Assembly: GCF_003918875.1 (NCBI RefSeq)
Contig: NW_025765942.1
Location: 1 to 64,000 of the forward strand
Length of the DNA: 64,000 nt
Direction of reading: 5' to 3'
Origin: Haliotis rubra
Lineage: Eukaryota
Shown: positions 1 through 48,136 of the stretch, one piece after another
How positions within the stretch are numbered: the first letter of the stretch is position 1
How the letters are laid out: every line of letters begins with the position of its first letter
Position numbers and translations under genes: made by a program
Notes under the pieces: generated by a model
Seen by the model: the letters and a program-made list of their open reading frames with translations, nothing else
Database searches by the model: none
Told to the model about the DNA's origin: nothing

Positions 1-955
1 CCATGTCGGTTGTGACGGTACACTCCACCATGTCAGTGATGACAGTTATGACATATACTCACCATGTCAGTTGTGACAGTACAGTCACCATGTCAGTGAT
101 GACAGTCTACTCACCATGTCAGGGATGACAGTATACTCACCATGTCAGCAGGGACAGTATACTCACCATGTCAGTGATGACAGTATACTCACCATGTCAG
201 CAGGGACAGTATACTCACCATGTCAGTGTTGATAGTATACTCACCATGTCAGTAATGACAGTATGACAGTTATGACAGTATACTCACCATGTCAGTTGTG
301 ACAGTACACTCACCATGTCAGTGATGACAGTATACTCACCATGTCAGTTATGAAAGTATACTCACCATGTCAGTTATGACAGTACACTCACCATGTCAGT
401 GGTGACAGTATACTCACCATGTCAGAGGTGACAGTATACTCACCGTGTCAGAGGTGACAGTATACTCACCATGTCAGCAGGAGAGGAAACTCAGTCAGTG
501 AAGTATACTCACCATGTCAGTTATGACAGTACACTCACCATGTCAGTGGTGACAGTATACTCACCATGTCAGAGGTGACAGTATACTCACCGTGTCAGAG
601 GTGACAGTACACTCACCATGTCAGTGGTGACAGTATACTCACCATGTCAGTGAAGACAGTACACTCACCATTTCAGTGATGACAGTACACTCACCATGTC
701 AGTGATGACAGCACACTCACCATGTCAGTGATGACAGCACACTCACCATGTCAGTGATGACAGTATATTCACCATTTCAGTGATAACAGTACACTCACAA
801 TGCCAGTGATGACAGTATACTCACCATGTCAGTGATGACAGTATACTCACCATGTCAGTGATGACAGTATACTCACCATGTCAGTGATGAGAGTATACTC
901 ACCATGTGAGTTTGGACAGTATACTCACCATGTAAGTGATGACTGTATACTCACC
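1..955. repeat. 26-bp minisatellite (consensus GTATACTCACCATGTCAGTGATGACA), ~35 copies
   Basis: Direct tandem repetition. Each unit contains a TGTCA-gtga-TGACA mini-palindrome and, on the - strand, ATG|GTGAGTA (a 5' splice-site match). Confidence 0.95.
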
Positions 956-2082: not shown

Positions 2083-2728
2083 ATTTAGATGAAAAAATGC
2101 AGCAGAGAGGGTTCGTTATTATTAACTTCATCTCTTGATGACTCGTTTCAGGCTGCAGAAGCCCTTGCTGCAAGAGTCTCCCCATGCTTGATGAGGAACT
2201 GCCATGTGGCTGCGTATCGACAGTATGTGACACAGAGGCTGATGTCCGCTGTGGTGCTGGCTGTTGATGAGCAAGCAGAAACTGTGATGTCAATGGAATT
2301 TGCCAAGGAAGAGATCCAAGTAACTGATGTATCTGGCAGTGAATCAAGACCTGATGTGTCAAACCGTAATCTGACACCTGGTGTTTCAGGCAGTGAACTG
2401 ACACCTGATGTGTCAGGCTGTAGGCCGACACCTATGGAATGTGAAATAAATGAAACTGAAAATGTAACATTTTCAGAGGAAACAACATGTGCTATATTAT
2501 CCAAGGAGGAGAGTGCAGGTTCTTCCATGGCTGAACTAGATCATGTTCATTCAGATGCCACTGCCCTTGGCCATGTAGAGACAACTAGAGACAGAAACTT
2601 CAGTGTTAGAAGTAGTATCCCATGTGAATGTAATGGATCTCAGGAAGATATGAAGATTGAAGTTGCAAAAGATTCTGTACAGGATCAGTCAGGACCGATG
2701 GAATCAGAGTCTTGTGTAAACACTCTTG
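2083..2728 (+). CDS. Upstream coding exon of the large ankyrin-repeat gene (acidic, Ser/Glu-rich, with four 9-aa repeats)
   Basis: ORF 2089-2790. Donor G|GTAAGC after 2728 is phase 1 and matches the acceptor at 3906/3907. The 5' boundary (ttattacag| at 2082 or ttag| at 2088) is uncertain. Confidence 0.65.
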
Positions 2729-3906
2729 GTAAGCTCTTTTTGAGTAAAGTATTTTTAGTACACAGAATATATCTTTTCAATCAGACATAAGTTTGATTGT
2801 TTGAAAGAGTGGTATGGTGGGTGCTACAGATAGGGCAGGAAATGCTTACCACTGACCACTGAACACCTGGTGTCAACACTGAGTTTTAGTGATCCATTCA
2901 GAACAAATTTCAGAGGACAGTTAAGACTGGATATACTATACTATAGTCCTTGAGTTTCATATAAATACTTCATAACGATAAGTGACTAACATATTTCACT
3001 TTTTAACAAGGTTCATGACCAACCTCAATGAAACTGATTGCCATCCCAACTGAACATGTTCTGATACCATTTGTTCCAGATAAATCCCCTTATTACCTCA
3101 TTCGGGGTCAAAACGTGGGTACTGGCCTGTTCCTGTTGACACTGTCTTACTCCAATTATGTACCCAATTTGATAAAACGGGGTTGTATTTAAACATACTC
3201 TGTCATAAGTAACCCTTCCTCAGAAAATAGGTCAACTCTAGTCAATCAGAAAGCAGCTTTCACATGTAAGCATTATGGATCTTGTTACAAACAGCAACTT
3301 TCATTCCAGACTATATTTTGAAAAGTACTTGACAAATATCTTGTTTCAAAAGTAAAAACCTGGACGAAAGAAAATTCTCGATTGTCTAATACTTTACGAT
3401 ACTTTTCTGGGGACTATGGAAAGAATATGTTGTTTCAATTGAATTTTGACGGAATCAGTGCTAACCTTTTTGTAGATCTATGATTAGAAATAAATTCCAA
3501 ATGTCACTTTACAGATCTGGTAAGCAGCGCTCTGATTGGTTTGAGGAAAGTTGTTCTGACAATATCCAGAATACTATATTCTCTATCATTGTTCATCATG
3601 TTTATGGTAACAAGAGCTGGGATAGTATTTTCATGAGATTGTTCATGATCTGCCGACATGTGATCTTACAGGCTGCCAAATAGGATAAAATATATGTCTG
3701 TTGAAAAGAAATTACAAATACCGGTAGCTTCTATGAATTCAATTTTTGACATTTCTTTGGGACCATCAGTTTGTAGTTTGCCACTACCTATTTTCAAAAA
3801 GAATACGACAATATATTTCCTGCCCAGTCGTTTAACTAAATTAACCCCAAATTGATGGTATTGTCATGGTTAGATTCACAGCTTTTTTAACCATTGTCTC
3901 TTGCAG

Positions 3907-6900
3907 ATCATGTTTCAACACGGTCACAGTGTGAGGCTTTATTTGAAAACCAGAAGCCAAACTTTACAGCTCTGATGCTACTTTGTTTGGACAGAGGAAA
4001 ACTGATGATGTCAAACTTGGATGATGCAGCAGAAGAGTGGCACATGAGGTGGTCCTGTCAGTTGACCAGAATGGACGAAATGAGTAAAGGGCAGTTTAGC
4101 CAGTGCTTACATGGCCTGACTGGGTCATTACTCACATCACAGGATACAGTAGTACAGTTCAGGTATAAAGATACACAATCTCATGTAGAAGCAATCATCA
4201 AGGCTGCTGCTGTTGAATATATCTGTGAACTAGATCCTTTGTTTATATACAGACACGTGAAGGTGCCCTGGACTTCCTTGAAGAATGACCCAGGATTTAC
4301 CATTTACTTGGATAAGAGCAGACAGAAGGACTTGGCATTACACTTTAAAACAGAGATAGAAAAACACAACTTTGCTTTTACCTTGACTCATCAAGCTTGT
4401 GGAAAGCACACTTTTGCTTCAACATTAGTACGATCCATTGGAATGGGTACCTCAGTACACAGAAATATAAGAGAACTTTTTAAAACATGTGATACAACTC
4501 ATCGTGGTACCTTCCTGAACTGGATATGTTTTGGAAGAAATGCTGAATTATACAAAGTGCTTTCAAGTTACATGACTGAAGAGGAGAGGAAAGAATGTGT
4601 CATACCGTGTTGTGTGAGTGGCAATTCAGAAATACTGCAACTACTTCTAGAAGATATGGAACTGGATGTAATTCTATCCTTGTCACCCAGCTTACAAGTA
4701 GTCTATGGCATTGACATTTGTAAGGGACAAACTGAATGTCTCCAAACTCATCATCTTCCCCCACTACATCTCGCCTCCTATTACGGACATGCAGACATCG
4801 TTCAGCTGCTGCTTCAGTATGGATGTGATGTAAATGCCCAGCTGCAGCCCCAGTTAGGTGAAGCAGGACATATCGCCGCCAGATCAACACCAGCTGCTGT
4901 AGCAGCACATGGAGGACATACAGAAGTATTAAAGTGTCTGATGGAAAGCAAGGCTGATCTCAGTCTGGTCGACTGCAACTTTAACACTCCCCTCCACTTA
5001 GCTTGTGAAGCCGGCCATAAAAGGAGTGTTTTGATACTAGCAAGTATGTGTAAGATCTCTCCCAGGAATAAAGATGGAAACACACCTGTTCATCTAGCCT
5101 GCCAAGAGGGAAGAATAGATGTTGTTGATATTCTACTTAAAAGAAATGCTGATCTCACCATACTAAACTTTGACAACTGTTCACCATTACATGTTGTATG
5201 TAGTAAAGGTTATTCCAATGTTTTACAGCTATTGCTGGATAGAACAGCATATCCATTGCCAGTTGATGGCTCCCAAACTCCCTTGCATGTGGCATGTCAG
5301 AATGGACACTCAGAGATTGTGAGGACACTTTTACAACACGGCGCTGGCAGGTCCGTTTCAGCTGGTAAAACCACACCCCTTGGAATAGCTGTGAGAGAAA
5401 GACATACTGGTGGTGTTAAACTGTTGATAGAGAAAGGGGCTGATGTATCTGGTGGTGGTTGTGGTCACACACCTCTGTCATGGGCCTGTAAGAATGGTCA
5501 TATTGATATAGTCAAACTGTTGATAGAGAAAGGGGCTGATGTATCTGGTGATGGTTATGGTTACACACCTCTGTCATGGGCCTGTAAGAATGGTCATATT
5601 GATATAGTCAAACTGTTGATAGAGAAAGGGGCTGATGTATCTGGTGGTGGTTGTGGTCACACACCTCTGTCATGGGCCTGTAAGAATGGTCATATTGATA
5701 TAGTCAAACTGTTGATAGAGAAAGGGGCTGATATATCTGCTGCTCATGATGGTGACACACCTCTGTCATGTGCCTGTGAGAATGGTCATATTGATATAGT
5801 CAAGCTGTTGATAGAGAAAGGGGCTCATGTATCTGGTGATGATGGCTATAGTGACACACCTCTGTCATGTGCCTATAAGAATGGTCATATTGATATAGTC
5901 AAGCTGTTGATAGAGAAAGGGGCTGATATATCTGGTGATGATGGCTATAGTGACACACCTCTGTCATGGGCCTGTAAGAATAGTCATATTGATATAGTCA
6001 AGCTGTTGATAGAGAAAGGGGCTGATATATCTGGTGATGATGGTTATAGTGACACACCTCTGTCATGGGCCTGTAAGAATGATCATATTGATATAGTCAA
6101 GCTGTTGATAGAGAAAGGGGCTGATATATCTGATGCTGCTGCTGATGGTGACACACCTCTGTCATGGGCCTGTATGAATGGTCATATTGATATAGTCAAA
6201 CTGTTGATAGAGAAAGGGGCTGATATATCTGGTGATGATGGCTATAGTGACACACCTCTGTCATGTGCCTGTGAGAATGGTCATATTGATATAGTCAAGC
6301 TGTTGATAGAGAAAGGGGCTGATATATCTGGTGGTGGTCGTTATGGTTACACACCTCTGTCATGGGCCTGTAAGAATGGTCATATTGATAAAGTCGAACT
6401 GTTGATAGAGAAAGGGGCTGATGTATCTGGTGGTGGTCGTTATGGTTACACACCTCTGTCATGGGCCTGTGAAAATGGTCATATTGATATAGTCAAACTG
6501 TTGATAGAGAAAGGGGCTGATGTATCTGCTGCTGATGGTGACATACCTCTGTTAAGGGCCTGTGAGAATGGTCATATTGATATAGTCAAGCTGTTGATAG
6601 AGAAAGGGGCTGATGTATCTGGTGATGGTTGCTGTGGTGAGATACTTCTGTTAGGCGCCTGTAAGAATGGTCATATTGATATAGTCAAGCTGTTGATAGA
6701 GAAAGGGGCTGATGTATCTGGTGATGATGGCTATAGTGACACACCTCTGTCATGTGCCTGTGAGAATGGTCATATTGATATAGTCAAGCTGTTGATAGAG
6801 AAAGGGGCTGATATATCTGGTGATGATGGTTATAGTGACACACCTCTGTCATGTGCCTGTGAGAATGGTCATATTGATATAGTCAAGCTGTTGATAGAGA

Positions 6901-9900
6901 AAGGGGCTGATATATCTGATGCTGCTGCTGATGGTGACACACCTCTGTCATGTGCCTGTGAGAATGGTCATATTGATATAGTCAAGCTGTTGATAGAGAA
7001 AGGGGCTGATATATCTGATGCTGCTCATGATGGTGACACACCTCTGTCATGTGCCTGTGAGAATGGTCATATTGATATAGTCAAGCTGTTGATAGAGAAA
7101 GGGGCTGATATATCTGATGCTGCTGCTGATGGTGACACACCTCTGTCATGGGCCTGTATGAATGGTCATATTGATATAGTCAAACTGTTGATAGAGAAAG
7201 GGGCTGATATATCTGGTGATGATGGCTATAGTGACACACCTCTGTCATGGGCCCTGTAAGAATGGTCATATTGATATAGTCAAGCTGTTGATAGAGAAAG
7301 GGGCTGATGTATCTGCTGCTGGTGGCTATTGTTACACACCTCTGTCATGTGCCTGTGAAAATGGTCATATTGATATAATCAAGCTGTTGATAGAGAAAGG
7401 GGCTGATGTATCTGCTGGTGATGGTTATGGTTACACACCTCTGTCATGTGCCTGTAGGAATGGTCATATTGATACAGTCAAACTGTTGATAGAGAAAGGG
7501 GCTGATGTATTTGCTGCTGATGGTGCCGGTGACTCACCTGTTGTCAGACTTTTAGGTAATTTGAACATATCGGCAGGTTGGTTTGCCAAAGAAGAAAGAG
7601 AAGTTGTCTCTTTGTTGCTGAAAGAAGTGTTACCTAAACATGTAACATCTTTGTCCGACTGTTTTCACAGATCATTGATTGATTGGGTCTTTACTTCTGA
7701 AAGTCAAGATATAGTAAAACATGTTTGTGATAGATCTGATAAGAAATCTTTCTCAGGCAGGCTATGTCAGTCTTTACTGAGGAAAGCTATTGTGAAGGGT
7801 GATGCATATGGCGTTTGGTTGCTCACAGAATATGCCACGCCAATGGTCTCCAATGATCTTCTCTTGAGTCTCATGTCAGTAGCTATAGGGAAGCGTCACA
7901 TTGCAGTTTTTCAAATGCTGCACTGCATCCCGCATGTTCATGATTCCAGTGACACATTAGTTCAGAAAGCATGTCGTTATGGATTGGTACAAGTCTGTAA
8001 TGTCCTGCTAAGATGTGGATCGAATCACTCTGGAGTATGTTTCACCAAAGCACTCAAAGTGAAAAATGTTGTTCTTGCCGAGCTGCTACTTAGCCATGGT
8101 GTGGATGTCAATGCACGTGATGATGATAACAACACTTCACTGCACTTAGCATGTGAAGTAGGGGAATGCAGTTTAGCGGAGGTCATTGCCAAAAGCATTG
8201 GTGTGTCACAAACGAACAAACGATCGGAAACACCTTTGTTTGTTGCATGTCGTTACGGATATGTCAATGTTGCCAAACTGTTGTTAAGCTTAGGTGCAGA
8301 CATAACAACAAAGGATGTCAATGGAAATACAGTTCTGCACTCTGTGTGTCAGTCTGGACAAGAGAAATTACTTCAGCTGTTTCTTCATTATATTTGGGTG
8401 GAAACAGACAATGGATATCATGATCAAGCACAGGAACACTTTTGCAATCGTAGGTATGCTGGTGATGTTCTTCATCTTCTTAACAATGATGACGAAACAC
8501 CCCTTCATGCTGCATGTAGAAATAAACGTGCAAAAGTTGTTAAATTACTGCTTCAGTACAAGGCTTCTGTATTCATGACTGATAAAAACGGACACACACC
8601 TCTCTATCATGCAATGAAACTAAAAACATTATTCAGTGTTCTTTGTTCAGCGACATGGGACATAAATGGGATGGATTCTGACGGGAATACCATTCTGCAT
8701 ATGGCATGCATGAAAGGCTGTTTGGAAAGTGTTGATGTACTTTGTAGCAGAGGAGCAAGTGTGGTGGTTTGCAACAAGAATCACGAATATGCACTTCATA
8801 AGTCAGCAGAGAATGGAAATGCAGAAATTATGAACATTCTTTTAGCTCACCAAGCTGATGTAAATGTGACTGACGGGGACAAAGCAGACCCCACTACATA
8901 TTGCATGTGCTGAGGGCCATTTGAAAATAGTTGAAGTCTTGATTAAAAGTGAAGTCAATGTAAATGTGCCTGATAAACATTTACTCGTTCCACTGCATCT
9001 CGCATGTAGAGACGGACACAGAGATATTGCTGATGCTTTGATGAAGTCATCAGCGGACATTGAACCATTTTCTGGGAAACGATACACACCGCTAATCTAT
9101 GCTTGTGAAGCCGGGCATATTGATTGTGTTGCACTCTTGGTGGAGAATGGTGCTTGTGTCAACATTGCAGGATTTCGGGGCAATACTCCTTTACACCGAG
9201 CATCTGTTGGGGGTCATGTGAATGTTGTGAAGTTGTTGCTTTCTTGTGGAGCTGACCCAATACGGGAAAATGACAATGGAAAGCTTCCATTACACCATGC
9301 AGTTCTGTGGGGCCACCTTGCTATTGTTAACATGCTATTAGACAAAACAAGATTGTTCCTTCATGAAATGGAAAACGTCATGTCATTGCTTGAACGGGCG
9401 TGTTCAAGAGGACATGCTGAGATAGTGAAGAGGTTGATCGATTTCATTCCAGGCGGTTCTATGTCATCCCTTCCCATGACTTCTCTTGTCGCAAGTGTCA
9501 TCCGCGCAACCACATTAAACTTTTACCTGTACTTTCGGATACAGGGCTGGACATCAAACTGCAAGATGAATTTGGAAGGAATGCACTGCAAATGTTATGT
9601 GAAATGGAAGGCTGTGAAATAGACACGTTAGAGAAAGTTTTAGAGTTAGGATTTGATTTATCAAAGACAACTGGACTAGGGGAATCAATGCTTCATGTTG
9701 TCTGCAAAGTAGGAAATATTGAACTGGTGAATTACTTGATTGGTAAAGGAATAGATATCCAGACAAAAGACACCAATGGAAATACAGCTCTCCATGCAGC
9801 ATGTGCTCGTGGTCACTTTGAAATAGCTAAAGTACTGATTGAGAAAGGACTTAGTTTCAATGAAAAGAACACAAGAGCAATGAGTCCACTTGATCTTGCA

Positions 9901-12085
9901 ATCATCAATACGCACTATGGAGTAACATGTGTATATGACCACTGGTATGCTGTGTCAAAGTGTCATCCAGGAATAAGCATGATATCCCTCCATCACATTT
10001 GCCGGGACAACAAAATACAGTTACTTTACAATTCTGAGATTGTTTTTGCTGAAAAAGACAGTGATGGAAATTCTGCTCTTCATGTTGCCTGTGAGGAAAG
10101 ATCGGAAGAGATAGTACAGTTATTGATAATAGCAGGAGCCTGGTTGCTTGTATTCAATAATCATGGAGAGGCACCAGTGCATATTGCTTGCCATGGACCA
10201 TGTCTTAAAGCTATGATAGATGCAATTCACAAGAAGATCAAGGTCAAGGTTTTGTCACTGCGTGACAAAAATGGAAATACTCCACTTCACCTTGTAATAC
10301 GCGCACAGAATCTAGGAAACTTGTGCATTCTTTTGGATAACAATGTTGATGTTGAAATGGTAAACAGCTTTCATCAAACTGCTCTGCACATTGCCTGCTA
10401 TGGTGGGAATGTGAACGTAGTTGAAAAACTCTTAGGAGCTGGAGCTAGTGTTATAGCTGTTGACAAAAAGTGGTAATACCCTCTTCATATAGTGGTGAAA
10501 TTGCAGGAGGAATCTACCATTGTTAAAGCATATAAACAGCACAGATGATGTGATTACTTCAAAGAATTATGAAGGAAGAACACCTTTCCACGAAGCAGTC
10601 AGCCATGGACACGCTTATGACATGATCCATTACATGATGACAGAATACTGTCACTTTTCTGCCATGGATCTGTCCGTGCCGCATCTTCAGCAGTTTATCA
10701 GACAGGTGGGCAGAGAAGACTTCATGAGACTGATGATGGCTGAAGAGATTGATATTAGCTCCATGGTAACACACCCTTACACTATGCAGCAGAAACTGAG
10801 AGCCTTGAAAATGGTGAGAACTTTGATCAGACGAGGGTACAGCTGCGATGCTAGAAATAAGCAAGGAAGACACCCTTGTATAATGCATGTTCAAGTGGAA
10901 GTGCAAACATAGTAAAACTGATTTTGCAAGAATCGTCATTATCTAGTGTCAGTGATTCTAACAATATGACACCTTTGCATGTAGCCAGTTGGAAGGGCCA
11001 CGTGGATGTTGTGAAGCTTCTGCTGGAATCTGACCATGATCTCCAGGCAAAAACCAATGACGGACAAACAGCACTTCATTTGTCTTGTCTGGAAGGACAC
11101 CGGGATGTTGCTGAAGTTTTATTGAAGGCTGGATCAGATATCAATGCATTAGACAGTGCTCTTGATACACCTCTGCATTTAGCTGCCAGAGCTGGTGTGT
11201 GTGATGTGGTGGTTCTCCAGGCTAAGTGGGGAGCGAGGGACACACAGTGTAACAAGCACGGTAAAACTGCTCTTCATGTAGCATGTCATGAAGGACATAC
11301 TGATGCTGTCAAAGCACTTCTCAACATGGGGAGTGATATTCTAGCAACAAATAATTAGAAAAGACCCCTCTGATGTTAGCCTGTGATCGACAACATGAGT
11401 CCATTGTGGAGTTGTTGCTTCATCGGTCACGGCTGCAAATAGAAGTTCAGTGTTCACAGAACCAAAATCAGGGCTTCTTACGGAAGAAAACATTCATCAA
11501 AAATCTAAACTACTGCCTTCTTGTGGCTTGTACGTACAATTACATTAACACAGTGAAACTGTTACTCAAGTATGATGTTGATATTAATCACAGACGTAGT
11601 GAGTCCGATATAGGGAACATATGTAGAGACAGGACTGAGGGCAGTTGTGCAAGTGACATGGACAAGGACAAGATGGAGGGTGGTTGTACAAGACATACGA
11701 ACAGAGTTCAGATGGACAGGGAGGCCGAACTTGAGACCCCGTTACATAGCTGCTGTTATGAAGGACATAATGAATGTGTTGAGCTTCTCATACAAGCCGG
11801 GGCACTGCTGGAGCCAAGAACTGCTCGTGGGGACACGCCACTGCATGTGGCTTGCAAACAAGGACATGCGCGTATTGTGGATCTGCTGATGGCACATGGG
11901 GTCTCGCTATCGCCTGTGAATTCTGATAATAGTACTCCGCTACACTATGCCAGTGAAGGAGGATATGAAGGCCTTGTGTCGAGACTGTTGGAAGCAGGTG
12001 CAGATGCTGACGTCAGAGACGTTCACGGGAAATCCCCACTTGAAGTATGCAGCAGCCGAGGGGTGAAAAACATCCTCCATAAAAG
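3907..12085 (+). CDS. ~8.2 kb exon of a giant ankyrin-repeat protein (roughly 60 repeats by hand estimate), broken by at least 6 apparent frameshifts
   Basis: Consecutive ORFs 3894-7259, 7216-8913, 8921-9622, 9592-10476, 10520-10912, 10876-11358 and 11373-12149 all carry TPLHxAxxxGH..VxxLL..GA motifs. Acceptor ttgcag|AT at 3906, donor AAAAG|GTACGT at 12085. Frame breaks near 7252, 8883, 9470, 10465, 10870 and 11355. Confidence 0.9.
5418..7530 (+). repeat. Coding tandem array of ~21 near-identical ankyrin units (93/96/99 bp)
   Basis: 22 LLIEKGA motifs. Unit is LLIEKGAD[V/I]S-(variable loop)-TPLS[W/C]AC[K/E/M/R]NGHIDIVK. Confidence 0.97.
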
Positions 12086-12659
12086 GTACGTTGGTTGTTG
12101 TTTAATGCCGCACTCAGCAATATTCCAGCTGTATGGCAGCGGTCTGTAAATGATTGGGTCTCAACAGCATGATCATCGTTCTACCTTAAAAGGTAAGAAG
12201 ACAATGATGCAAAAAAATGCTACTGTTAGTAATAATATAATGTTACATATTTATTTCGCCATTCAAATTCTTTAAACTCTCTTCATGATCACCTTGATGC
12301 CAGAAATATTATGAGTCTTTTAGAAGCAGAATCCTGTTTAAATGATTTACAATATCCAGCTCTAGAATTCTTTAATATGTGTTATGGGGAGAGGATATGA
12401 TGTTATGAAAAGTATTTTCTGAGACTGCCATAACGCTAGGATGCGCAGAGCATTATGTGAAACAGCACTGCAAATACCTGATTCCTGTTTAAATGTTCAG
12501 CCATAACTGGTCACCAGTACTTTCTGTGATCATCAGTAAGAGGTGAATTGATGGATCCGGTGGTCAGACTTGGTGACGTGGTTGTTTGTTGATTGTTGCT
12601 CATGATATCAATCACTAGATTACCTTGTCCAGATAATATATTTACAGGCTGAATATCAA

Positions 12660-14493: not shown

Positions 14494-14894
14494 TATTAAC
14501 TTCACCATTTGAGATTAGTTGTTCACAGTTTTATCCATTTTTTCAACAGTTTAAATGATCATTGTGTCAAATGTGTTTTATTTCTATTGTAGTTTGCCAA
14601 TGGCTCTCTTTGATACTGATATTTTGGGAAGGATCATTTGGTATTGGGGAGCTAGGGCTTTATAAAAAAAGAAAGTAAATTTTCACAGAAAGTGTTTGAA
14701 AAAATAATTATTGTTCACAATATGGACTAAAATAACATCATATCTGCCACAAAAATTACATTTTTGCAAGGCTGTTATTTTTTCATAAAAAGTCCAACAA
14801 CATGAAGGCTTGTAGTTTCAATTGGAAATACAAGTAGGTTCAAACTATCCAGTTTGAATAAAAACTTCAATCCGAGCCATTCCTGAATATATAT

Positions 14895-17800
14895 GATTAA
14901 ACTATCTGAGCAATTGCTGTATATATTTGATAAAACTATCTGAACCATTTCTGTATATATATTTGATGAGACCATCTGAACCATTACTGTATATTATTTG
15001 ACAAGACCATCTGAACCATTACTGTATATATTTGACAAGACTATCTGAGCCATTACTGCATATATTTGATAAGACTATCTGAACCATTACTGCATATATT
15101 TGATAAGACTAACTGAACGATCACTGTATATATTTGATGAGACCATCTAAACTATCACTGTATTTGTTTGACATGTCTGTGTAAACCATTACTTTAAATA
15201 TTTGACAACACTGTCTGAACCATTACTGCATATATTTGACCAGACTGTGTGAACCATTACTGCATATATTTGACAAAACTCTCTGAACCATTACTGTAAA
15301 TATTTGATAACACTATTATGTATTTGATAAGACCATCTGAACCATTACTGCATATATTTGACAAGACTGTGTGAACCGTTACTGCATATATTCAATAAGA
15401 CCATCTGAACCATTACTGTACATATTTGATAAACTATCTGAACCATTACTGTATATATTTGATAAACTATCTGAACCATTACTGTATATATTTGATAAGA
15501 CCATCTGAACCATTACTGTATATTATTTGACAAAACCATCTGAACCATTACTGTATATATTTGATAGACCATCTGAACCATTACTGCATATATTTGACAA
15601 AACTGTTTGAACCATTACTGCATATATTTGATAAGACTATCTGAACCATTACTGTATATATTTGATAACACTATCAGAACCATTACTGCATATATTTGAT
15701 AAGACTATCTGAATGATTAGTGCATATATTTGACAAGACACTCTGAACCATTACTGTATATATTTGATAAGACCATCTGAACCATCACTGTATATGTTTG
15801 ACAAGACTGTGTGAACCACTTCTTTAGATATTTAATAACACTGTCTGAACCATTACTACATATATTTCACAGACTATCTGAACCATTACTGTATATATTT
15901 GATAAACTATCTGAACCATTACTGCATATATTTGACAAAAACTGCCTGAACCATTACTGTATATATTTGATAAGACTATCTGAACCATTACTGTACATAT
16001 TTGATAAGGCTATCTCAACCATTACTGCATATATTTGATAAGACTATCTGAATCATTAGTGCATATATTTGACAAGACCATCGGAACCATTACAGCATAT
16101 ATTTGATAAGACTTACTGAACGATCACTGCATCTTTTTGATAAGACCATCTAAACCATCACTGTATATATTTGACAAGACTGTGTGAACCACTACTTTAG
16201 ATATTTGATAACACTGTCTGAACCATTACTGCATATATTTCAAAGACTATCTGAACCATTACTGTATATATTTGACAAGACTACCTTAACCATTCCTGCA
16301 TATATTTGATAAACTATCTGAACCATTACTGTATATATTTGATAAGACCATGTGAACCATTACTGCATATATTTGATAAACTATCTGAACCATTACTGCA
16401 CATATTTGACAAAACTGCCTGAACCATTACTGCACATATTTGACAAAACTGCCTGAACCATTACTGTATATATTTGACAAAATTATCTGAACCATTACTG
16501 CATATATTTTATAAACTATCTGAACCATTACTGTATATATTTGATAAGACCATCTGAACCATTATTGCATATATTTGACAAAACTGCCTCAACCATTACT
16601 GTACATATTTGATAAGACTATATGAACCATTACTGCATATATTTGATAAGACTATCTGAATCATTAGTGCATATATTTGACAAGACCATCTGAACCATTA
16701 TAGCATATATTTGATAAGACTTACTGAACGATCACTGCATCTTTTTGATAAGACCATCTAAACCATCATTGTATATATTTGACAAGATTGTGTGAACCAT
16801 TACTTTAGATATTTGATAACACTGCCTGAACCATGACTGCATATATTTCAAAGACTATCTGAACCATTACTGTATATATTTGACAAGATTATCTTAACCA
16901 TTCCTGCATATATTTGATAAACTATCTGAACCATTACTGTATATATTTGATAAGACCATCTGAACCATTACTGTATATATTTGATAAGACTATCTGAACC
17001 ATTACTGCATATATTTGATAAGACTATCTGAATGATTAGTGCATATATTTGACAAGACACTCTGAACCATTACTGTATATATTTGATAAGACTAGCTTAA
17101 TGATCACTGTATCTATTTGATAAGACCATCTGAACCATCACTGTATATGTTTGACAAGACTGTGAACCACTTCTTTAGATATTTAATAACACTGTCTGAA
17201 CCATTACTACATATATTTCACAGACTATCTGAACCATTACTGTATATATTTGAAAAGACTATCTGAACCGTTACTGCATATATTTGATAAACTATCTGAA
17301 CCATTACTGTATATATTTGATAGGACCATCTGAACCATTACTGCATATATTTGATAAACTATCTGAACCATTACTGCACATATTTGACAAAACTGCCTGA
17401 ACCATTACAATACATATTTGATAAGACTATCTGAACCATTACTGTATATATTTGATAAGACTATCTGAACCATTACTGCATATATTTGATAAGACTATCT
17501 GAATGATAAGTGCATATATTTGACAAGACACTCTGAACCATTACTGTATATATTTGATAAGACTAACTTAATGATCACTGTATATATTTGATAAGACCAT
17601 CTGAACCATCACTGTATATGTTTGACAAGACTGTGTGAACCACTTCTTTAGATATTTAATAACACTGTCTGAACCATTACTACATATATTTCACAGACTA
17701 TCTGAACCATTACTGTATATATTTGAAAAGACTATCTGAACCGTTACTGCATATATTTGATAAACTATCTGAACCATTACTGTATATATTTGATAAGAGC

Positions 17801-18525
17801 ATTTGAACCATTACTGCATATATGTGATGAACTATCTGAACCATTACTGCATATATTTGACAAAACTGCCTGAACCATTGCTTTATATATTTGATAAGAC
17901 TATCTGAACCATTACTGTATATATGTGATAAGACTATCTGAACCATTACTGCATATATTTGATAAGAGTATCTGAACCATCCCTTTGTATATTTGATAAA
18001 CTATCTCAATCATTACTGCATATATTCGATGAGAACATCTGAACCATTACTGTGTATATTTGATAAACTATCTGAACCATTACTGTATATATTTGATATA
18101 CTATCTGAACCATTACTGTAAATATTTGATAAACTATCTGAACCATTACTGTTTATATTTGATATGAATATCTGAACCATTACTGCACATATTTGATAAA
18201 CTATCTGAACCATTACTGCATGTATTTGACAAAACTGCCTGAACCATTACTGTATATATTTGATAAAACTGTCTGAGCCGTTACTCTATATATTTGATAA
18301 GACCATCTGAACCATCACTTCATATATTTGATGAGACCATCTGAATCATTACTGCATATATTTGATAAAACTGTCTGAGCCATTACTGCATATATTTGAT
18401 AAACTATCTGAATCATTACTGTATATATTTGATAAAACTGTCTGAGCCATTACTGCATATTTTTGATGAAACCATCTGAACCATTACTGTATATATTTGA
18501 TTAGATTATCTAAGCCATTACTGTG
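14895..18525. repeat. 33-34 bp satellite (CTATCTGAACCATTACTGTATATATTTGATAAGA), ~105 copies, with higher-order blocks
   Basis: Direct tandem repetition. Diagnostic variant monomers recur at ~470 bp and ~610 bp spacing. Confidence 0.95.
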
Positions 18526-20048: not shown

Positions 20049-21272
20049 ATCGTTAGATGTACTTTGTCGCGCCGTTAATGTTACTGTCCGAAATATCCAT
20101 CTGGTTGGATCAACATCTGTAAATATGGCTAGCTAATACCAAGTGAGAAATTTTTTTGTTTTCAAAAATTGTAAAAATAAAGATAAAACATCGTCCACTG
20201 TTTTATCTCCATACTTCCCCGTGTATTTGTGATGAGTTACCATGGTTGTGGGTGTAATCATGCCCCTTAAATCTTTTGTCAGTGATTTGATCTAACACTG
20301 GGAAAAAACAATATTTCTGTTATACCACAGAGTGGCAACGTTCTGTCTTACACTGAAACTAGTCAATCTTCACCAGTTATCTACTACTGCAAAGAAGTTA
20401 AGGATAACCCAACTATCCTTATCCATATCTCTCATAACCATAGTCAATCTTTCATGCCATGATATATGAACCATAGCAACATGAAAGAATCCTTTCAGTG
20501 GTATGTTTTACAAAACAAATAAAAGGTACTGAGAGGTATTTCTGTCCCTAAATCCCCATCAGGCAGTCTTGTCATCCAGAGAATCCCCACAACACAAGAC
20601 AACAATAAGAGTCCCTAAATCCCCCAAAAGCAGTCTTGTCATTCAGAGAATCCCAACCACACGAAACAACAATAAGAATCCCTAATTCACCCCAAAGCAG
20701 TCTGGTCATTCAGAGAATCCCAACCACACAAGATAACAATAAGAATCCCTAAATCCCCCAAAAGCAGTCTGGTCATTCAGAGAATCCCAAAAACACAAGA
20801 CCACAATAAGAGTCCCTAAATCCCCCAAAGGCAGTCTTGTCATTCAGAGAATCCCAAAAACACAAGACAACAATAAGAGTCCCTAAATCCCACAAAAGCA
20901 GTCTTGTCATTCAGAGAATCCCAACCACAAGAAACAACAATAAGAATCCCTAATTCACCCCAAAGCAGTCTGGTCATTCAGAGAATCCCAACCACACAAG
21001 ACCACTATAAGAATCCCTAATTCACCCCAAAGCAGTCTTGTCATTCAGAGAATCCCAACAACACAAGATAACAATAAGAATCCCTAAATCCCCCTAAAGC
21101 AGTCTGGTCATTCAGAGAATCCCAACCACACAAGACCACTATAAGAATCCCTAATTCACCCCAAAGCAGTCTGGTCATTCAGAGAATCCCAACAACACAA
21201 GATAACAATAAGAATCCCTAAATCCCCCTAAAGCAGTCTGGTCATTCAGAGAATCCCAACCACACAAGACTA

Positions 21273-22145
21273 CAACAAGTGTTTGCCACGGATATTGCAA
21301 TGTCCCCTGCCACTATAGAATGGAATATCTATATTTACTACTTTTCATTTTTTTTGTCACATACAAGATGCCTGAAATACCTGGTGTCTGCATAATCACC
21401 CAATGTTGGCTGTCGACATAATTGAAAACATTGGGTGCAATGTTTTATGAGATATCGAGTTTAAATAAGTTTGAAAAGTGGTCAAAGTGTCGTAGTGACC
21501 TTGAAGATAAGGCCAAGGTCACCCAAATAAACTGGTGTCTGCAAAATCCCCTAATGTAGGCTGTCACCAAATTTGAAGACATTGGGTACAACAGTCCAGA
21601 GATGTCTCATTAACAAGACTGACTGACTGAGTATGGTTTTGCGCCGTTTTTAGCAATATTCCAGTAATATCCCGGCGGGGGACACTAGAAATGGGCTTCA
21701 CAAGTTGTACCCAAGTGGGGAATCGAACCCGGGCCTTCGGCGTGACGAGCGAACGTTTTAACCACTAGGCTACCCCACCGCCCCGCGCATTAACAAGAGC
21801 TTGAAAAGTGTTCAAAGTGTCATGGTGACTTTGAAGACAAGGTCAAGGTCACCCAAATCAACTGGTGTCAGCATAATCCCCTAAAGTAGTCTGTCACCAA
21901 ATTTGAAGACATTGGGTGCAACAGTTCATGAGACATCACGCTAACAAGAGTTTGAAAAGTGGTCAAAGTGTCAGGGTGACCTTGAAAATATGGTCAAGGT
22001 CACCCAAATCGACTGCTCTCTGCATAATCCCCCAATGTAGGTGGTCACCAAATTTGAAGACATTAGGTACAACAGTTCATGAGATATCGCATTAACAGAA
22101 TCGCGACGTACGGACATACGTACGGACGCCGCTGAATACATAGGA
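21273..22145. mobile_element. Non-autonomous element with ~130-bp internal GACCTTG/AAGGTCA repeats and an ACGG microsatellite (pearl/HINE-like)
   Basis: Several copies of gaccttgaa..aaggtcaaggtcacccaaat..aaatttgaagacattggg, ending in gacgtacggacatacgtacggacg. Architecture resembles molluscan Helentron-associated elements (recalled, not searched). Confidence 0.55.
21619..21787 (-). mobile_element. tRNA-derived SINE family B with 11-bp target-site duplication
   Basis: Reverse complement has A box (TAGCCTAGTGG) and B box (GGTTCGATTCC). CATTAACAAGA is duplicated at 21608-21618 and 21788-21798. Confidence 0.9.
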
Positions 22146-23474
22146 CAATAAGAATCCCTGAATCCCCACAAAGAAGTCAACAAAATCCCAGCAATACAAC
22201 ACAAGACTACAATAAGAGTTCCTACATCCCCACCGGGCAGTCTTGTCATCCAGAGAATCCCAATAACACAAGACTACAATAAGAGTTCCTGCATCCCCAC
22301 CGGGCAGTCTTGTCATCCAGAGAATCCCAACAACACAAGAGTACAATAAGAGTTCCTACATCCCCACCAGGCAGTCTTGTCATCCAGAGAATCCCAACAA
22401 CACAAGACTACAAAAAGAGTTCCTACATCCCCAGCGGGAAGTCTTGTCATCCAGAGAATCCCAATAACACAAGACTACAATAAGAGTTCCTACATCCCCA
22501 CCGGGCAGTCTTGTCATCCAGAGAATCCCAACAACACAAGAGTACAATAAATCTCTTTACTGTGGCATCATATGACCATGTGACATTTCTACAATAAACA
22601 AAAGTAAACTGTTGCAAAATATAAAGTAAACAGCACAGCCTGGTCCATGATTCAAAAACACCAAGCTTACAAGGGAAAAGACATAGCACAATTTATATTC
22701 ACATTTGTCCAGTTCATGTTGTGTTGACACAAAAATACATACATTGAAGACACGATTTCCGATTTTGGAAAATAATCACACTTCCCATGAGCACTCAAAC
22801 ACACATTCATGCTGACATCCCTCACAGAAATATTGCTACAAGACAAGACAGACACAAATGTATATAGTAGCACTCTGAAATAGAACGAACACATCAGTAG
22901 TACCTTGGATGGTTACAAAATTTCATTTTTGTTTCTTTTTCGACCTGAACGATGTATCTTTCCCTTCCTTTAGGTCCATGACATTCCCCTTTGTTCTGTG
23001 GACCAGACATGACGATTCCTTTCTGCATATTTTCAGGGTTTCAGACAACCAAGGATTTTCCTTAGTTTGGGAATCGGGGACAAGAGAAAGTCTTTCATTT
23101 CTCATTGGTGTGTGTTTCGGCCACTAGGTATCCTTTCAATAAGTTTTGTGTTCCATGTATGAGAAAGGGTTTCCCATGGTGTCTTCTGGACATGAGAAAG
23201 CTTTCCGTTACTCTGATGTTAACATAACATTGAGGATTTTCCTCTGGTTTTGCTTCAAAAACAAGAAGAAAGCCTTTCATATAATTTTACATTGTCAACA
23301 TGAGGAGGCCTTTCCCTTTTCGTAGTATTGTGCTCCTGGCAAGAGAAAGCCTTTCATTTGGCTTCGTGTTCAGAACAAAAGAATGCCGATTCCTTCCCCA
23401 AGCATCGTTTTCTGGACAACGGTCCTTGTTTTTTCTGTGCATGTTTGTTTCTTTTGTACAGGTCTTGTACTTTC

Positions 23475-34094: not shown

Positions 34095-34977
34095 ATGGCA
34101 GGTCGAAGATGGAACAAGTTGGCAACCTTCAGAGGAATATGTCACAGCATGAAGAAGAAGCTGTGCTGCTGTGGTTGGCCAGGATATCAGGTAGGTGGCT
34201 CCAACTGCCCTTCAGATATACTTAATCTACCATGGTCCTACTTGCTTCCTCCCTTCCTTTCACCCTACCCTCCTTTCTCCTTAAGTCCTCTATCACATTA
34301 GCATCCTCAAATTGAGTTGACACATTCATAATATTCATAGTAAAGAGTTGACCTATGATGGCATGTGAAGTTACCAATCAAATTCCATTCACACTTGGAA
34401 TTCACATTCTCAGGGGAAAGAAATCTATGTTATTGATGACTTCATAATTTTAAGACTCACGCATACTATCACAGTGCGGGCGGTGGGGTAGCCTAGAATA
34501 AATTTCTCATAGAAGGTGAACGTTAGAATATATTCCGCATAGTAGATGAATAAGAATATGATATATTTGGCGTAAATTACACAATTCTTTGTACTCGTCG
34601 TGTCATATGTTGAATTTGCTGTTTTCCCCTGTCCTCAGTTGGTGCCACCAGACGAGGACTGGAAGGACGAGGACCGCCTGACAGAAGATGAAAGAAGGTC
34701 GTGTGTGTCAGAGAGGACCCTGTTCCTGGTGTCTCAACACGTGGGCGGGGGTTTCCAGATGCTGGGTCTGAGACTGGGGCTTCCCTACGTTAGTGTGGAG
34801 AGGTTCACGCTGTCACAGTCATCGCCTCAGATGCAGATATTCGCCATGCTGAACACGTGGAGACAGCGGAAGGGAAGACGGGCAACTGTTGAAGTCCTGG
34901 TTCAAGCCCTATCTGACAGCATGTCGGTCTGCACGGTGGACATGCCTCATGTCTACAGGGTGATCCGTGAAATGTAA
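34095..34977 (+). CDS. Death-domain-only protein copy 1 (exons 34095-34190, 34639-34977), open frame
   Basis: MAGRRWNKLATFRGICHSMKKKLCCCGWPGYQ|LVPPDEDW...LFLVSQHVGGGFQMLGLRLGLPYVSVERF..QMQIFAMLNTWRQRKGRRATVEVLVQAL: death-fold pattern. CAG|GTAGGT..cctcag| is phase 0. Start codon uncertain. Confidence 0.8.
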
Positions 34978-35240
34978 CAATGTGTGTCACCATATACATC
35001 CACGTACAGCAAGCAGCTCTCTGGGACTTATGACATACTTAAATATATTTCAAGTTCACTGCAGTTTTGCGAGATGTTGTTGAGAAGTATCAGTAATCTG
35101 CCACTATTTTCATTGTAATATTTCAGTAATGTCGATGCGTCCCTCCCATGATGTCTTGGACTCCGTGTAAACGTGGGATATTTTATGAAGGTGTTGACCT
35201 AATAAAGTCTTACAATGTTCTGTTTTGTGTCTATTCTTTA

Positions 35241-38780: not shown

Positions 38781-39727
38781 ATGGCAGAGTTTGCCAGTTT
38801 ATTTATCGTTGTGGGAGAGAGCGCACTCCGAGTCGCTGTGCTCATGGCAGGTCGAAGATGGAACAAGTTGGCAACCTTCAGAGGAATATGTCACAGCATG
38901 AAGAAGAAACTGTGCTGCTGTGCCTGGCCAGGATATCAGGTAGGTGTCTCCAACTGCCGCTCATATATACTTAATCTACCATGGTCCTACTTGCTTCCTT
39001 CCTTCCTTCCTTTCTCCCTACCCCCTTCTCTCCTTAAGTCCTCTATCTCATTAGCATCCTCAAATTGAGTTGATTCATACATAATATTCATAGTAAAGAG
39101 TTGACCTATGATGGCATGTGAAGTTACCAATCAAATTCCATTCACACTTGGAATTCAGATTCTCAGGAAAGAAATCTGTGTCATTGACGACTTCATAATT
39201 TTAAGACTCACGCATACTATCACAATGTGGGCGGTAGGGTAGCCTAGAATAGATTTCACATAGAAGGTGAACGTTAGAATATATTCCGCATAGAAGATGA
39301 ATAAGAATATGATATATTTGGTGTAAATTACACAATTCTTTGTACTCGTCGTGTCATATGTTGAAGTTACTGTTTCCGCTGTCCTCAGTTGGTGCCACCA
39401 GACGAGGACTGGGAGGACGAGGACCGCCTGACAGAAGATGAAAGAAGGTCGTGTGTGTCAGAGAGGACCCTGTTCCTGGTGTCTCAACACGTGGGCGGGG
39501 GTTTCCAGATGCTGGGTCTGAGACTGGGGCTTCCGTACGTCAGTGTGGAGAGGTGCACGCTGTCACAGTCATCGCCTCAGATGCAGATATTCGCCATGCT
39601 GAACACGTGGAGACAGCGGAAGGGAAGACGGGCAACTGTAGAAGTCCTTGTTCAAGCCCTGTCTGACAGCATGTCGGTCTGCACGGTGGACATGCCTCAT
39701 GTCTACAGGGTGATCCGTGAAATGTAA
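38781..39727 (+). CDS. Death-domain-only protein copy 2 (exons 38781-38939, 39389-39727), 165 aa, open frame
   Basis: Only copy with an upstream in-frame ATG (MAEFASLFIVVGESALRVAVL...). Canonical GT-AG intron. Confidence 0.82.
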
Positions 39728-40122
39728 CATTGTGTGTCACCATATACATCCACGCACAGCAAGCTGCTCTCTGGGACTCATGACATACTTAAATTTATTT
39801 CAAGTTCACTGCAGTTTTGCGAGATGTTGTTGAGAAGGATAACTCACCCACCACTATTTTTATTGTAATATTTCAGTAATGTCGATGTGTCCCTCCCATG
39901 ATGTCTTGGACTCCGTGTAAACGTGGGATATTTTATGAAGGTGTTGACCTAATAAAGCTCTAAAGTCTTGTTCTCTTGTGTGTCTCTCTTTAAGAGTAAA
40001 TGAAGCGTGTGGTTGTAACGTGCTGTTGAAGACCGTGAATTAAGTTCTGGTTTAACCTGTACAAACAGACATGCGGTCACAAGCAGCATGTCCGTGAAAT
40101 GTAAATATGTTTCCTAATAAAC

Positions 40123-44993: not shown

Positions 44994-46722
44994 ACTGTAG
45001 GTCCCCATAGTCCCTAGTATGGTGATCTACCTTGAGTTGCTGGTGATCTATATATATAGTACTGTAGGTCCCAATAGTCCCTAGTATGGTGATCTACCTT
45101 GAGTTGCTGGAGATCTATATATATAGTACTGTAAGTCCCCATGGTCCCTAGTATGGTGATCTACCTTGAGTTGCTGGTGATCTATATATATAGTACTGTA
45201 GGTCCCCATAGTCCCTAGTATGGTGATCTACCTTGAGTTGCTGGTGATCTATATATATAGTACTGTAGGTCCCCATAGTCCCTAGTATGGTGATCTACCT
45301 TGAGTTGCTGGAGATCTATATATATAGTACTATAGGTCCCCATAGTCCCTAGTATGGTGATCTACCTTGAGTTGCTGGTGATCTATATATATAGTACTGT
45401 AGGTCCCCATAGTCCCTAGTATGGTGATCTACCTTGAGTTGCTGGAGATCTATATATATAGTACTGTAGGTCCCCATAGTCCCTAGTATGGTGATCTACC
45501 TTGAGTTGCTGGTGATCTATATATATAGTTCTGTAGGTCCCCATAGTGCCTAGTATGGTGATCTACCTTGAGTTGCTGGTGATCTATATATATAGTTCTG
45601 TAGGTCCCCATAGTCCCTAGTATGGTGATCTACCTTGAGTTGCTGGCGATCTATATATATAGTACTGTAGGTCCCCATAGTGCCTAGTATGGTGATCTAC
45701 CTTGAGTTGCTGGTGATCTATATATATAGTACTGTAGGTCCCAATAGTCCCTAGTATGGTGATCTACCTTCAGTTGCTGGTGATCTATATATATAGTACT
45801 GTAGGTCCCCATAGTCCCTAGTATGGTGATCTACCTTGAGTTGCTGGTGATCTATATATATAGTACTGTAGGTCCCAATAGTCCCTAGTATGGTGATCTA
45901 CCTTGAGTTGCTGGTGATCTATATATATAGTACTGTAGGTCCCAATAGTCCCTAGTATGGTGATCTACCTTGAGTTGCTGGTGATCTATATATATAGTAC
46001 TGTAGGTCCCCATAGTCCCTAGTATGGTGATCTACCTTGAGTTGCTGGTGATCTATATATATAGTACTGTAGGTCCCAATAGTCCCTAGTATGGTGATCT
46101 ACCTTCAGTTGTTGGTGATCTATATATATAGTACTGTAGGTCCCAATAGTCCCTAGTATGGTGATCTACCTTCAGTTGTTGGTGATCCATATATATAGTA
46201 CTGTACGTCCCCATAGTCCCTAGTATGGTGATCTACCTTCAGTTGTTGGTGATCTATATATATAGTACTGTAGGTCCCCATAGTCCCTAGTATGGTGATC
46301 TACCTTCAGTTGTTGGTGATCTATATATATAGTACTGTAGGTCCCCATAGTCCCTAGTATGGTGATCTACCTTGAGTTGCTGGTGATCTATATATATAGT
46401 ACTGTAGGTCCCAATAGTCCCTAGTATGGTGATCTACCTTGAGTTGCTGGTGATCTATATATATAGTACTGTAGGTCCCCATAGTCCCTAGTATGGTGAT
46501 CTACCTTCAGTTGTTGGTGATCTATATATATAGTACTGTAGGTCCCAATAGTCCCTAGTATGGTGATCTACCTTGAGTTGCTGGTGATCTATATATATAG
46601 TACTGTAGGTCCCCATAGTCCCTAGTATGGTGATCTACCTTCAGTTGCTGGTGATCTATATATATAGTACTGTAGGTCCCCATAGTCCCTAGTATGGTGA
46701 TCTACCTTGAGTTGCTGGTGAT
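44994..46722. repeat. 67-bp minisatellite, ~26 highly homogeneous copies
   Basis: Unit TAGTACTGTAGGTCCCCATAGTCCCTAGTATGGTGATCTACCTTGAGTTGCTGGTGATCTATATATA; period 45001 to 45068. Confidence 0.97.
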
Positions 46723-47452: not shown

Positions 47453-48136
47453 ATGGCAGGTCGAAGATGGAACAAGTTGGCAACCTTCAGAGGACTATGT
47501 CACAGCATGAAGAAGAAACTGTGCTGCTGTGCCTGGCCAGGATATCAGGTAGGTGTCTCCAACTGCCGCTCATATATACTTAATCTACCATGGTCCTACT
47601 TGCTTCCTTCCTTCCTTTCTCCCTACCCTCCTCTCTCCTTAAGTCCTCTACCACATTAGCATCCTCAAATTGAGTTGATTCATTCATAATATTCATAGTA
47701 AAGAAATGATGAATATGAATATGATATATTTGGCGTAAATAACACATTTCTGTGTACTCGTCGTGTCATTGAAAATGCTGTTTTCCCCTGTCCTCAGTTG
47801 GTGCCACCAGACGAGGACTGGGAGGACGAGGACCGCCTGACAGAAGATGAAAGAAGGTCGTGTGTGTCAGAGAGGACCCTGTTCCTGGTGTCTCAACACG
47901 TGGGCGGGGGTTTCCAGATGCTGGGTCTGAGACTGGGGCTTCCGTACGTCAGTGTGGAGAGGTGCACGCTGTCACAGTCATCGCCTCAAATGCAGATATT
48001 CGTCATGCTGAACACGTGGAGACAGCGGAAGGGAAGACGGGCAACTGTTGAAGTCCTTGTTCAAGCCCTGTCTGACAGCATGTCGGTCTGCACGGTGGAC
48101 ATGCCTCATGTCTACAGGGTGATCCGTGAAATGTAA
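47453..48136 (+). CDS. Death-domain-only protein copy 3 (exons 47453-47548, 47798-48136), open frame
   Basis: Same structure; intron is ~200 bp shorter than in the other copies. Confidence 0.8.

Follow-up and report, generated by a model that had tools for sequence, protein, structure and literature searches.

How an animal gene comes to encode a long run of ankyrin repeats that are almost copies of one another in their framework and strongly diversified at the residues lining the binding groove is the question raised by a locus of the blacklip abalone Haliotis rubra. The DNA analyzed here, referred to as the window, is the stretch of 64,000 nucleotides at positions 1 to 64,000 of the forward strand of contig NW_025765942.1 (RefSeq assembly GCF_003918875.1), which we call C1052 where it has to be told from other contigs of the same assembly. 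The array lies within an 8.3-kb exon of a gene whose family is confined to Haliotis. The answer that we hold to be fairly probable is that the array is a germline run of about 21 recently homogenized ankyrin repeats within a longer solenoid, and that it provides a diversified binding surface with which a peptidase would recognize its partners or substrates.

A single array was reported by Tandem Repeats Finder (TRF) at 5421-7539, with a period of 99, 21.6 copies, 91% matches, and a score of 3193. Cutting the sequence at the LLIEKGA motif divided it as follows.

5421 to 7482, plus strand: hypervariable array of 21 full, near-identical 33-residue ankyrin units, 93-100 nt each
7483 to 7581, plus strand: degenerate 22nd unit, the 3' edge of the array

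The initial annotation, made from the sequence alone, had described about 21 units sharing an almost invariant DNA scaffold. The number of units and their near identity (91% DNA matches) agree with that description, while the scaffold proved not to be strictly invariant, with 17 of its 78 nucleotide sites variable. The unit consensus reads LLIEKGAD(I/V)S, then the loop, then TPLS(W/C)AC(K/E/M/R)NGHIDIVK, and the scaffold variants that are common affect ankyrin position 30 (I/V), position 10 (W/C), and position 13 (K/E/M/R), besides the synonymous pair AAG/AAA. Scaffold changes restricted to one or two units are nonsynonymous without exception, and some of them alter the consensus T, P, and G residues. 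Across the arrays compared in this study, units are 90-92% identical in DNA, 78-82% in whole-unit amino acid sequence, and 87-89% in the amino acid sequence of the scaffold only.

The loop consists of 5, 6, or 7 residues, encoded by 15, 18, or 21 nt, so that its length changes by whole codons throughout, as had been claimed. The loop types comprise GGGCGH, GDGYGY, AAHDGD, GDDGYSD (7 units), DAAADGD (3 units), GGGRYGY, AADGD, GDGCCGE, DAAHDGD, AAGGYCY, and AGDGYGY; every type listed in the initial annotation was found in the array, along with three that it had not listed (AADGD, DAAHDGD, and AGDGYGY). Loop codons are almost exclusively NNT or NNC, dominated by GGT (41), GAT (27), and GCT (18); G occupies the first position in 75% of them, and the third base is T or C except in one codon. 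The per-position entropy is highest at the canonical ankyrin binding positions 32, 33, 1-5, 10, and 13, which confirms the concentration of variation in the hairpin loop and at two sites of helix 1, positions 10 and 13.

The membership of the repeats in the ankyrin family is secure. Pfam Ank_2 matched the open reading frame (ORF) pieces flanking the array with E-values of 1e-42 to 1e-71 (the relevant models are PF00023 and PF12796, with the signature TPLH / GH / LL..GA in a 33-residue helix-loop-helix-hairpin), and the PDB sequence matches of the array are Ankyrin-1 and designed ankyrin repeat proteins (DARPins), with E-values of 1e-106 to 1e-100. An AlphaFold2 (AF2) model of units 1-10, with a predicted local distance difference test score (pLDDT) of 80.6, contains pairs of 7- and 9-residue helices separated by loops of 13-14 residues, and the W/C and K/E sites map to the first helix of the repeat in this model.

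The history of the array can be read from comparison with two H. rubra contigs, C414 and C2443, that carry arrays of the same kind, and with the gene LOC124124203 of Haliotis rufescens. Measured over the scaffold, units of one array lie 0.051-0.079 apart and those of H. rubra and H. rufescens 0.145-0.157 apart, and the H. rufescens scaffold bears near-fixed species-specific changes, some of which are synonymous. Because the distance within arrays is far below that between species and the species differences are nearly fixed, the arrays evolve in concert. Parts of units are also exchanged between units by recombination or gene conversion. The four-gamete test failed in 10 of 28 informative site pairs in the window, including sites merely 7 nt apart, and in 8 of 45 and 25 of 105 site pairs in two other arrays, and a single loop type in the window occurs with two to four scaffold haplotypes. 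Recombination inside units, which had been proposed from the recurrence of loop types with different helix types, is thus upheld.

The loops and the scaffold differ in the kind of substitution that they have accumulated, as judged from the proportions of nonsynonymous (pN) and synonymous (pS) differences in pairwise comparison of units.

7-codon loops, window (C1052): pN 0.264, pS 0.119
7-codon loops, C414: pN 0.224, pS 0.018
7-codon loops, H. rufescens: pN 0.157, pS 0

Scaffold pS is 0.03-0.10 (0.06 in C414 and 0.10 in H. rufescens), and the pN/pS ratio of the scaffold without codons 14, 17, and 18 is 0.42-1.18. Counted as minimal changes at codon positions 1 and 2 versus position 3, the loop has 36 versus 3 and the scaffold 60 versus 20 (Fisher's test, p = 0.027). 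The entropy peaks at the binding positions, in the loops and at positions 10 and 13, come with pN well above pS, in agreement with the earlier claim that variation falls on the ankyrin binding groove. A greater age of the loops relative to the scaffold, or a general hypermutability of their DNA, would raise loop pS, and no such rise is seen. Two explanations were rejected on this account: that conversion homogenizes the scaffold and spares old loops, given loop pS values of 0.018 and 0 against scaffold values of 0.06 and 0.10, and that loop DNA undergoes general point hypermutation, given that third codon positions hardly vary.

The same design is found in intact genes elsewhere. In H. rufescens LOC124124203, on a 54-Mb record, the exon of 3008 codons is intact and contains an array of 25 units, and the gene can be regarded as the ortholog because it is fully collinear with the H. 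rubra locus; outside the array, the exons of the two species are 78-80% identical. Its array contains duplicated blocks of three and four units, and its loops are runs of GCT, GAT, and GGT of 18-48 nt (up to 16 residues), among them (GAT)8 and (GAT)9. RefSeq isoforms X1-X5 of LOC124124203 differ at residues 1590-1793 by deletions of 32, 33, 65, and 98 residues, corresponding to one to three units, which reflect either a difference in repeat number between the donors of RNA and DNA or an artefact of aligning repeats. An H. rubra paralog, LOC124260704 on contig C2602, has an intact frame of 2711 codons with its own 20-unit array, and over the N-terminal 1240 residues it shares about 35% identity with the ortholog. 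At its hypervariable positions, chosen by entropy (33, 2, 3, 4, 7, 10, 13, and 32), pN is 0.30 and pS 0.06, against 0.08 and 0.09 for the rest of the unit. The loops of this paralog are of fixed length, and their codons are not GNT runs. Paralogs in H. rufescens and Haliotis cracherodii have the same layout. Judging from these sequences, the design of the array is a retained trait of the family, and since it is kept in a paralog without GNT loops, slippage alone would be insufficient to explain the array.

The array is one part of a much larger coding unit, whose remaining portions in the window are the following.

39 to 955, plus strand: 26-bp minisatellite in the upstream intron (TRF)
2146 to 2727, plus strand: upstream coding exon (tblastn, 86% identity to residues 547-740 of XP_046559267)
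3894 to 4760, plus strand: helical linker, the first domain of the giant exon (phmmer; no Pfam family)
4761 to 5420, plus strand: diverged ankyrin repeats upstream of the array (Pfam Ank_2/Ank, ORF residues 289-485)
7582 to 12149, plus strand: remainder of the giant exon, with diverged ankyrin repeats (ORF pieces and Pfam, six frames)

The open frame around the upstream exon extends over 2089-2790, and XP_046559267 is the H. rubra RefSeq model on contig C414. The window begins at contig base 1 within the intron minisatellite, so the 5' exons, including those for the C48 peptidase domain, lie off the window; tblastn located peptidase exons upstream of the C414 copy only. The ending of the contig inside the 26-bp minisatellite is probably the reason for the assembly break. 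The minisatellite occupies the same position in C414 and in the H. rufescens locus (L030:14696-16147). An exhaustive phmmer search with the 289-residue linker returned 7 matches among 1.84 billion representative sequences, every one from Haliotis and the best from C414, and in those 7 proteins the linker lies 740-1050 residues from the N-terminus. Its single-sequence AF2 model is poor (pLDDT 48).

A search by region recovered the family from H. rufescens, H. cracherodii, Haliotis asinina, and H. rubra only, in proteins of 3,288-3,815 residues (about 3,800 in the H. rufescens ortholog). Its members are composed of a weak CG-1-like match in some of them, a Ulp1/SENP-like C48 peptidase, the helical linker, and a long ankyrin run. 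Peptidase_C48 (PF02902) passes the Pfam cut-off in five members with E-values of 1e-14 to 1e-17, and the match of the H. rufescens ortholog to SENP1 (E 2.5e-11) aligns the catalytic His, Gln, and Cys, with Asn in place of the catalytic Asp. A weak Pfam match to CG-1, the DNA-binding domain of the CAMTA type, occurs at N-terminal residues ~10-190 of three members, two of which exceed the threshold, and its combination with ankyrin repeats resembles the architecture of CAMTA. Pfam did not find NACHT, NB-ARC, TIR, or death domains in the window pieces or in residues 1 to ~1300 of five full-length members, and the earlier suggestion of an innate immune receptor loses its footing on this point.

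The window, C414, and C2443 are collinear over at least 27 kb with 91-97% identity, sharing the intron satellite, the ankyrin gene, a 34-bp satellite, and a Drosha exon with a minisatellite. The segments involved are C1052:1-27000, C414:128000-162000 (minus strand), and C2443:1-22000, each with private 1-bp indels; they resemble unpurged haplotigs or redundant, poorly polished contigs, and gene models there will be broken. Their arrays are composed differently.

C1052 (window): 21.6 units, with loops GGGCGH, GDGYGY, GDDGYSD, and others
C414: 23 in-frame units and a partial 24th, with loops AADGHGN, TARGYRY, AADGDGY, and others
C2443: 19 splits with two at double length, or about 20 units, with loops AVGSFGY, AAGGCGY, and others

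No loop type is common to the three arrays. At the syntenic place, H. rufescens carries a single gene of this kind, with a 1393-residue gene behind it on the opposite strand. Where the exon is unique, toward its 3' end, each sequencing run yields one contig per site at a likeness of at least 95%. Because of the single H. rufescens gene, the one contig per site, and the history of the assembly, it is plausible that the three contigs are haplotigs or redundant contigs of one locus; real paralogs are also possible. The three differing arrays are such as allelic shuffling would produce, although they could belong to alleles or to paralogs.

The reading frame from 3894 to 12149 is split into seven pieces in the window, with indels of 1-4 bp after the array and one break inside it.

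7249 to 7252, plus strand: extra C within a C run of unit 19, frame-breaking, probably an assembly error

Evidence from reads was taken from Logan contigs of four runs, covering three samples and two species labels, placed on 7200-12150. At least 12 frame-breaking indels of the window, including the C of unit 19, are missing in the contigs of the four runs; the extra C at 7252 is missing in all four, with weaker support because contigs of other units also fit there. The sites where run contigs disagree with the window are mostly differences that the window alone has against both other copies. Correction of the twelve listed indels opens a single frame of 1909 codons at 3891-9619, running through the array, and leaves three breaks, namely 1-bp gaps at 9507 and 10866, private to the window relative to both other copies, and a stop at ~10493, which lies by an indel-dense stretch (10495-10508) where the corrections may be imprecise. 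According to the assembly paper, the genome was built from ~30x Nanopore data by merging two assemblies, polished by two rounds of Racon and one of Pilon, and purged from 1.9 to 1.378 Gb. In C2443, a G4 run is cut to G3 or G2 in 7 of the 19 split-out units, which is an error of the Nanopore homopolymer type. Because the frameshifts are absent from the read contigs and C2443 follows this homopolymer pattern, errors of the Nanopore assembly are the probable source of the frameshifts of the window, and the gene itself is probably intact. In addition, the contigs of run X7, which comprise 47 million letters and whose RNA nature is only guessed, tile the exon at a depth of 4-29 and suggest its transcription. 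As a practical caution, frameshifts in this region of the H. rubra assembly should be treated as probable errors, and the region should be taken as represented three times.

Taken together, a mechanism can be proposed as follows. The ankyrin solenoid would form the C-terminal part of a giant Haliotis-specific protein with a Ulp1/SENP-like C48 domain near its N-terminus. Unequal crossing-over and short-tract gene conversion among the 99-bp units would keep the scaffold uniform within a species, and the same exchanges would give rise to duplicated unit blocks and to new pairings of loop types with variants of helix 1. The hairpin loop, whose codons form a (GNT)n run with imperfections both here and in LOC124124203, would gain and lose whole codons, most simply by replication slippage, and the GCT/GAT/GGT runs of 18-48 nt in the ortholog point to such codon slippage as the source of the length changes. 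Amino acid changes at the positions that line the groove (32/33, 1-5, 10, and 13) are probably favored, while synonymous sites stay quiet. The outcome would be a long binding surface assembled from a small, reshuffled alphabet of loop types, which is predicted to serve most likely for the recognition of substrates or partners of the peptidase.

Several points weigh against this proposal. The pN and pS values are pairwise proportions over units that recombine and whose pairs are not independent, and Fisher's test gives only p = 0.027. The choice of positions by entropy inflates pN in the LOC124260704 comparison. Loop variation in the ortholog is mostly change in the length of Ala/Asp/Gly runs, which slippage alone could yield. 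The assembly is error-prone here, and singleton differences in the window array may themselves be errors. In the copy carried by the window, the exons for the peptidase fall outside the contig, and the Asn that stands in place of the catalytic Asp would leave peptidase activity not assured. Finally, the indication of transcription takes a run to be RNA on a guess.

The strongest rival explanation, which we consider unlikely though deserving of weight, is that the array is a neutral by-product of a young tandem amplification, in which structurally permissive, low-complexity triplet-run loops drift by slippage and under relaxed constraint, with diversity not selected for and no special role in recognition. 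Such drift would account for loops that are GNT runs changing in length by whole codons, and for the H. rufescens loop types, which are mostly Ala/Asp/Gly run-length variants including poly-Asp; the rare scaffold changes of the window, all nonsynonymous, suggest little purifying selection since the last homogenization, and the scaffold pN/pS of the window is near 1. Relaxed constraint alone is, however, expected to bring pN to about the level of pS, whereas loop pN (0.16-0.26) exceeds synonymous diversity in the same arrays (0.03-0.10) by a factor of 2-9. The loops of C414 are of the same length except for two, and what separates them is point changes at first and second codon positions, which slippage could not produce; the C2602 paralog shares the hypervariable positions without triplet-run loops; pure slippage, tried as an explanation in its own right, was weakened by these two arrays. 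Moreover, three arrays from two species share the W/C alternatives at position 10 and the variability of position 13, and the design has been retained in paralogs that are only ~35% identical over the N-terminal 1240 residues. A decaying pseudogene, or a misassembly of noisy Nanopore reads whose variation would be without biological meaning, is quite improbable. The seven frame pieces, which had prompted the pseudogene idea, are joined by a C2443 copy that is frame-broken in about half its units, by the ~30x Nanopore assembly with its two Racon rounds and one Pilon round, and by the finding that even the best run contains only 0.61 of the words of the stretch. Against this, the twelve indels are missing from the contigs of four runs and the shortened G4 runs of C2443 are what homopolymer errors produce, and the pseudogene was dropped on these grounds; furthermore, loop types recur across units and differ by many bases, unlike random errors, and the same design is present in the intact H. 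rufescens exon and in the intact 2711-codon frame of H. rubra.

An immune role can be put in two forms, and neither is easy to credit. The first extends the suggestion of the initial annotation, an innate immune receptor with allelic or somatic repeat shuffling: the array would be reshuffled somatically, in the manner of a lamprey variable lymphocyte receptor (VLR) built from ankyrin repeats, or allelically for non-self recognition, and this we find very hard to believe. The evolutionary signature does resemble that of fungal repeats with a part in recognizing non-self, the arrays of the three collinear contigs are wholly different, the H. rufescens RefSeq isoforms have deletions of 32-98 residues inside the array, and expansions of ankyrin genes in abalone have been loosely tied to defense in published papers. 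However, Pfam found no signaling or nucleotide-oligomerization domain (NOD) in the window pieces or in the five family members searched, the SUMO-protease-like partner and the weak CG-1 match of some paralogs point to a nuclear or cytosolic enzyme, and isoform deletions within repeats are commonly alignment artefacts. Somatic shuffling in particular found nothing in its favor, as the array is complete within one germline exon and cassette assembly would be unneeded. The other form, which is speculative and in our judgment rather unlikely, would make the array the hyper-polymorphic, positively selected, non-self-sensing surface of a Haliotis-specific family of giant SUMO-protease-like ankyrin proteins, the three arrays being haplotypes of one locus and the family an animal counterpart of the fungal receptors discussed below. 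The targets would then be pathogen proteins, mobile elements, or allogeneic factors, with the peptidase in the place of the NOD switch. Recognition of peptidase partners or substrates by a homogenized germline array stays the reading that we favor.

The DNA around the gene is exceptionally rich in tandem repeats. A 34-bp satellite of ~108 copies lies downstream of the gene (window 14870-18524; L030:32468-35118; C2443:13186-17328), and its presence at the same place in H. rufescens indicates that the satellite locus is older than the split of the species. Satellites with 67-bp and 40-bp units occupy intergenic positions 20545-21279, 22196-22550, 44994-46722, and 61223-61561. The window also holds five copies of a ~400-bp segment (34584-34979, 39335-39729, 47729-48138, 52346-52791, and 57034-57485), spaced by 4.6-8.4 kb, which match small genes of H. 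rufescens at 80-88%. Those genes have a weak Death-domain match and precede the ortholog on its upstream side (L030:294-2733); the five copies may be a tandem cluster of death-domain-like genes.

The array invites comparison with several known systems. It is like DARPins, which are among its top PDB sequence matches, in having a consensus-like fixed scaffold with diversity placed in the hairpin and at helix-1 positions, and as an analogy of design the comparison is apt. Unlike DARPins, which have two or three internal repeats, caps, and fixed loops, it comprises about 21 natural units in a longer solenoid with loops of 5-7 residues. The DARPin library of Binz et al. in 2003 reportedly randomized positions 2, 3, 5, 13, 14, and 33, and relative to that list positions 1, 10, and 32 are additionally variable in the abalone array. 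In its N-terminal region, the Haliotis family is like Ulp1/SENP in matching PF02902 and SENP1 and unlike it in having Asn for the Asp of the catalytic His-Asp-Cys triad, which in Ulp1/SENP is accompanied by an oxyanion Gln; the Haliotis proteins are also about 3,500-4,100 residues long. Some large modular proteins of intracellular bacteria also pair a CE-clan protease with ankyrin repeats (PMC6133264); unlike them, the Haliotis gene is interrupted by introns and keeps its synteny within the genome of an animal. The likeness to VLRs ends at the germline gene, which is incomplete in VLRs, whereas the array is complete in one exon in both H. rubra and the ortholog. Nor is there support for placing the family among the NOD-like receptors (NLRs) and related signal transduction ATPases with numerous domains (STAND), which are defined by NACHT or NB-ARC, usually with a death-fold, TIR, or other effector domain, given that Pfam finds only Peptidase_C48, a weak CG-1 match, and ankyrin repeats in the window pieces and in residues 1 to ~1300 of five members. 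Abalone papers describe ankyrin-gene expansions and highly divergent haplotypes loosely linked to defense, which are context for the present gene and not evidence about it.

Of known systems, the nearest to this array are the highly internally conserved (HIC) ankyrin (ANK), tetratricopeptide (TPR), and WD repeats of fungal NLRs, such as those of Podospora het-e/het-d/nwd and Pa_3_8560 (Dyrka et al. 2014, PMC4986451), which have been described as evolving in concert, as polymorphic in repeat number, and as positively selected at the inner helices and the hairpin loop. The abalone array resembles them in its near-identical tandem repeats, its concerted evolution with shuffling, and its hypervariable groove positions; concerted evolution and repeat shuffling are evident from the scaffold distances, the four-gamete failures, and the duplicated blocks. 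Its amino acid identity of 78-82% falls below the HIC threshold of at least 85% over at least 100 residues, a shortfall due to the loops. The abalone array differs from the fungal repeats in its animal host, in having a C48 peptidase as partner instead of NACHT or NB-ARC, and in that the length of its loop varies via a triplet codon run. The repeat-number polymorphism of HIC repeats is one between individuals, whereas the unit counts of the abalone array differ between contigs of one assembly. If the three contigs are haplotypes, the array would be among the most polymorphic coding arrays in a mollusc, and the locus would be a tractable one for recognition diversity in abalone, a farmed and disease-threatened group. 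Repeat arrays of this sort are rare and little studied in animals, where HIC-type repeats occur in only 0.8% of metazoan ANK/TPR/WD proteins (PMC4986451). A uniform scaffold with diversified binding residues is how fungi are thought to generate the recognition diversity of NLRs quickly, and in Haliotis the same design is carried by an animal on a different enzyme, is kept in several paralogs and at least three species, and in one lineage is coupled to a codon-run loop that changes its length in frame.

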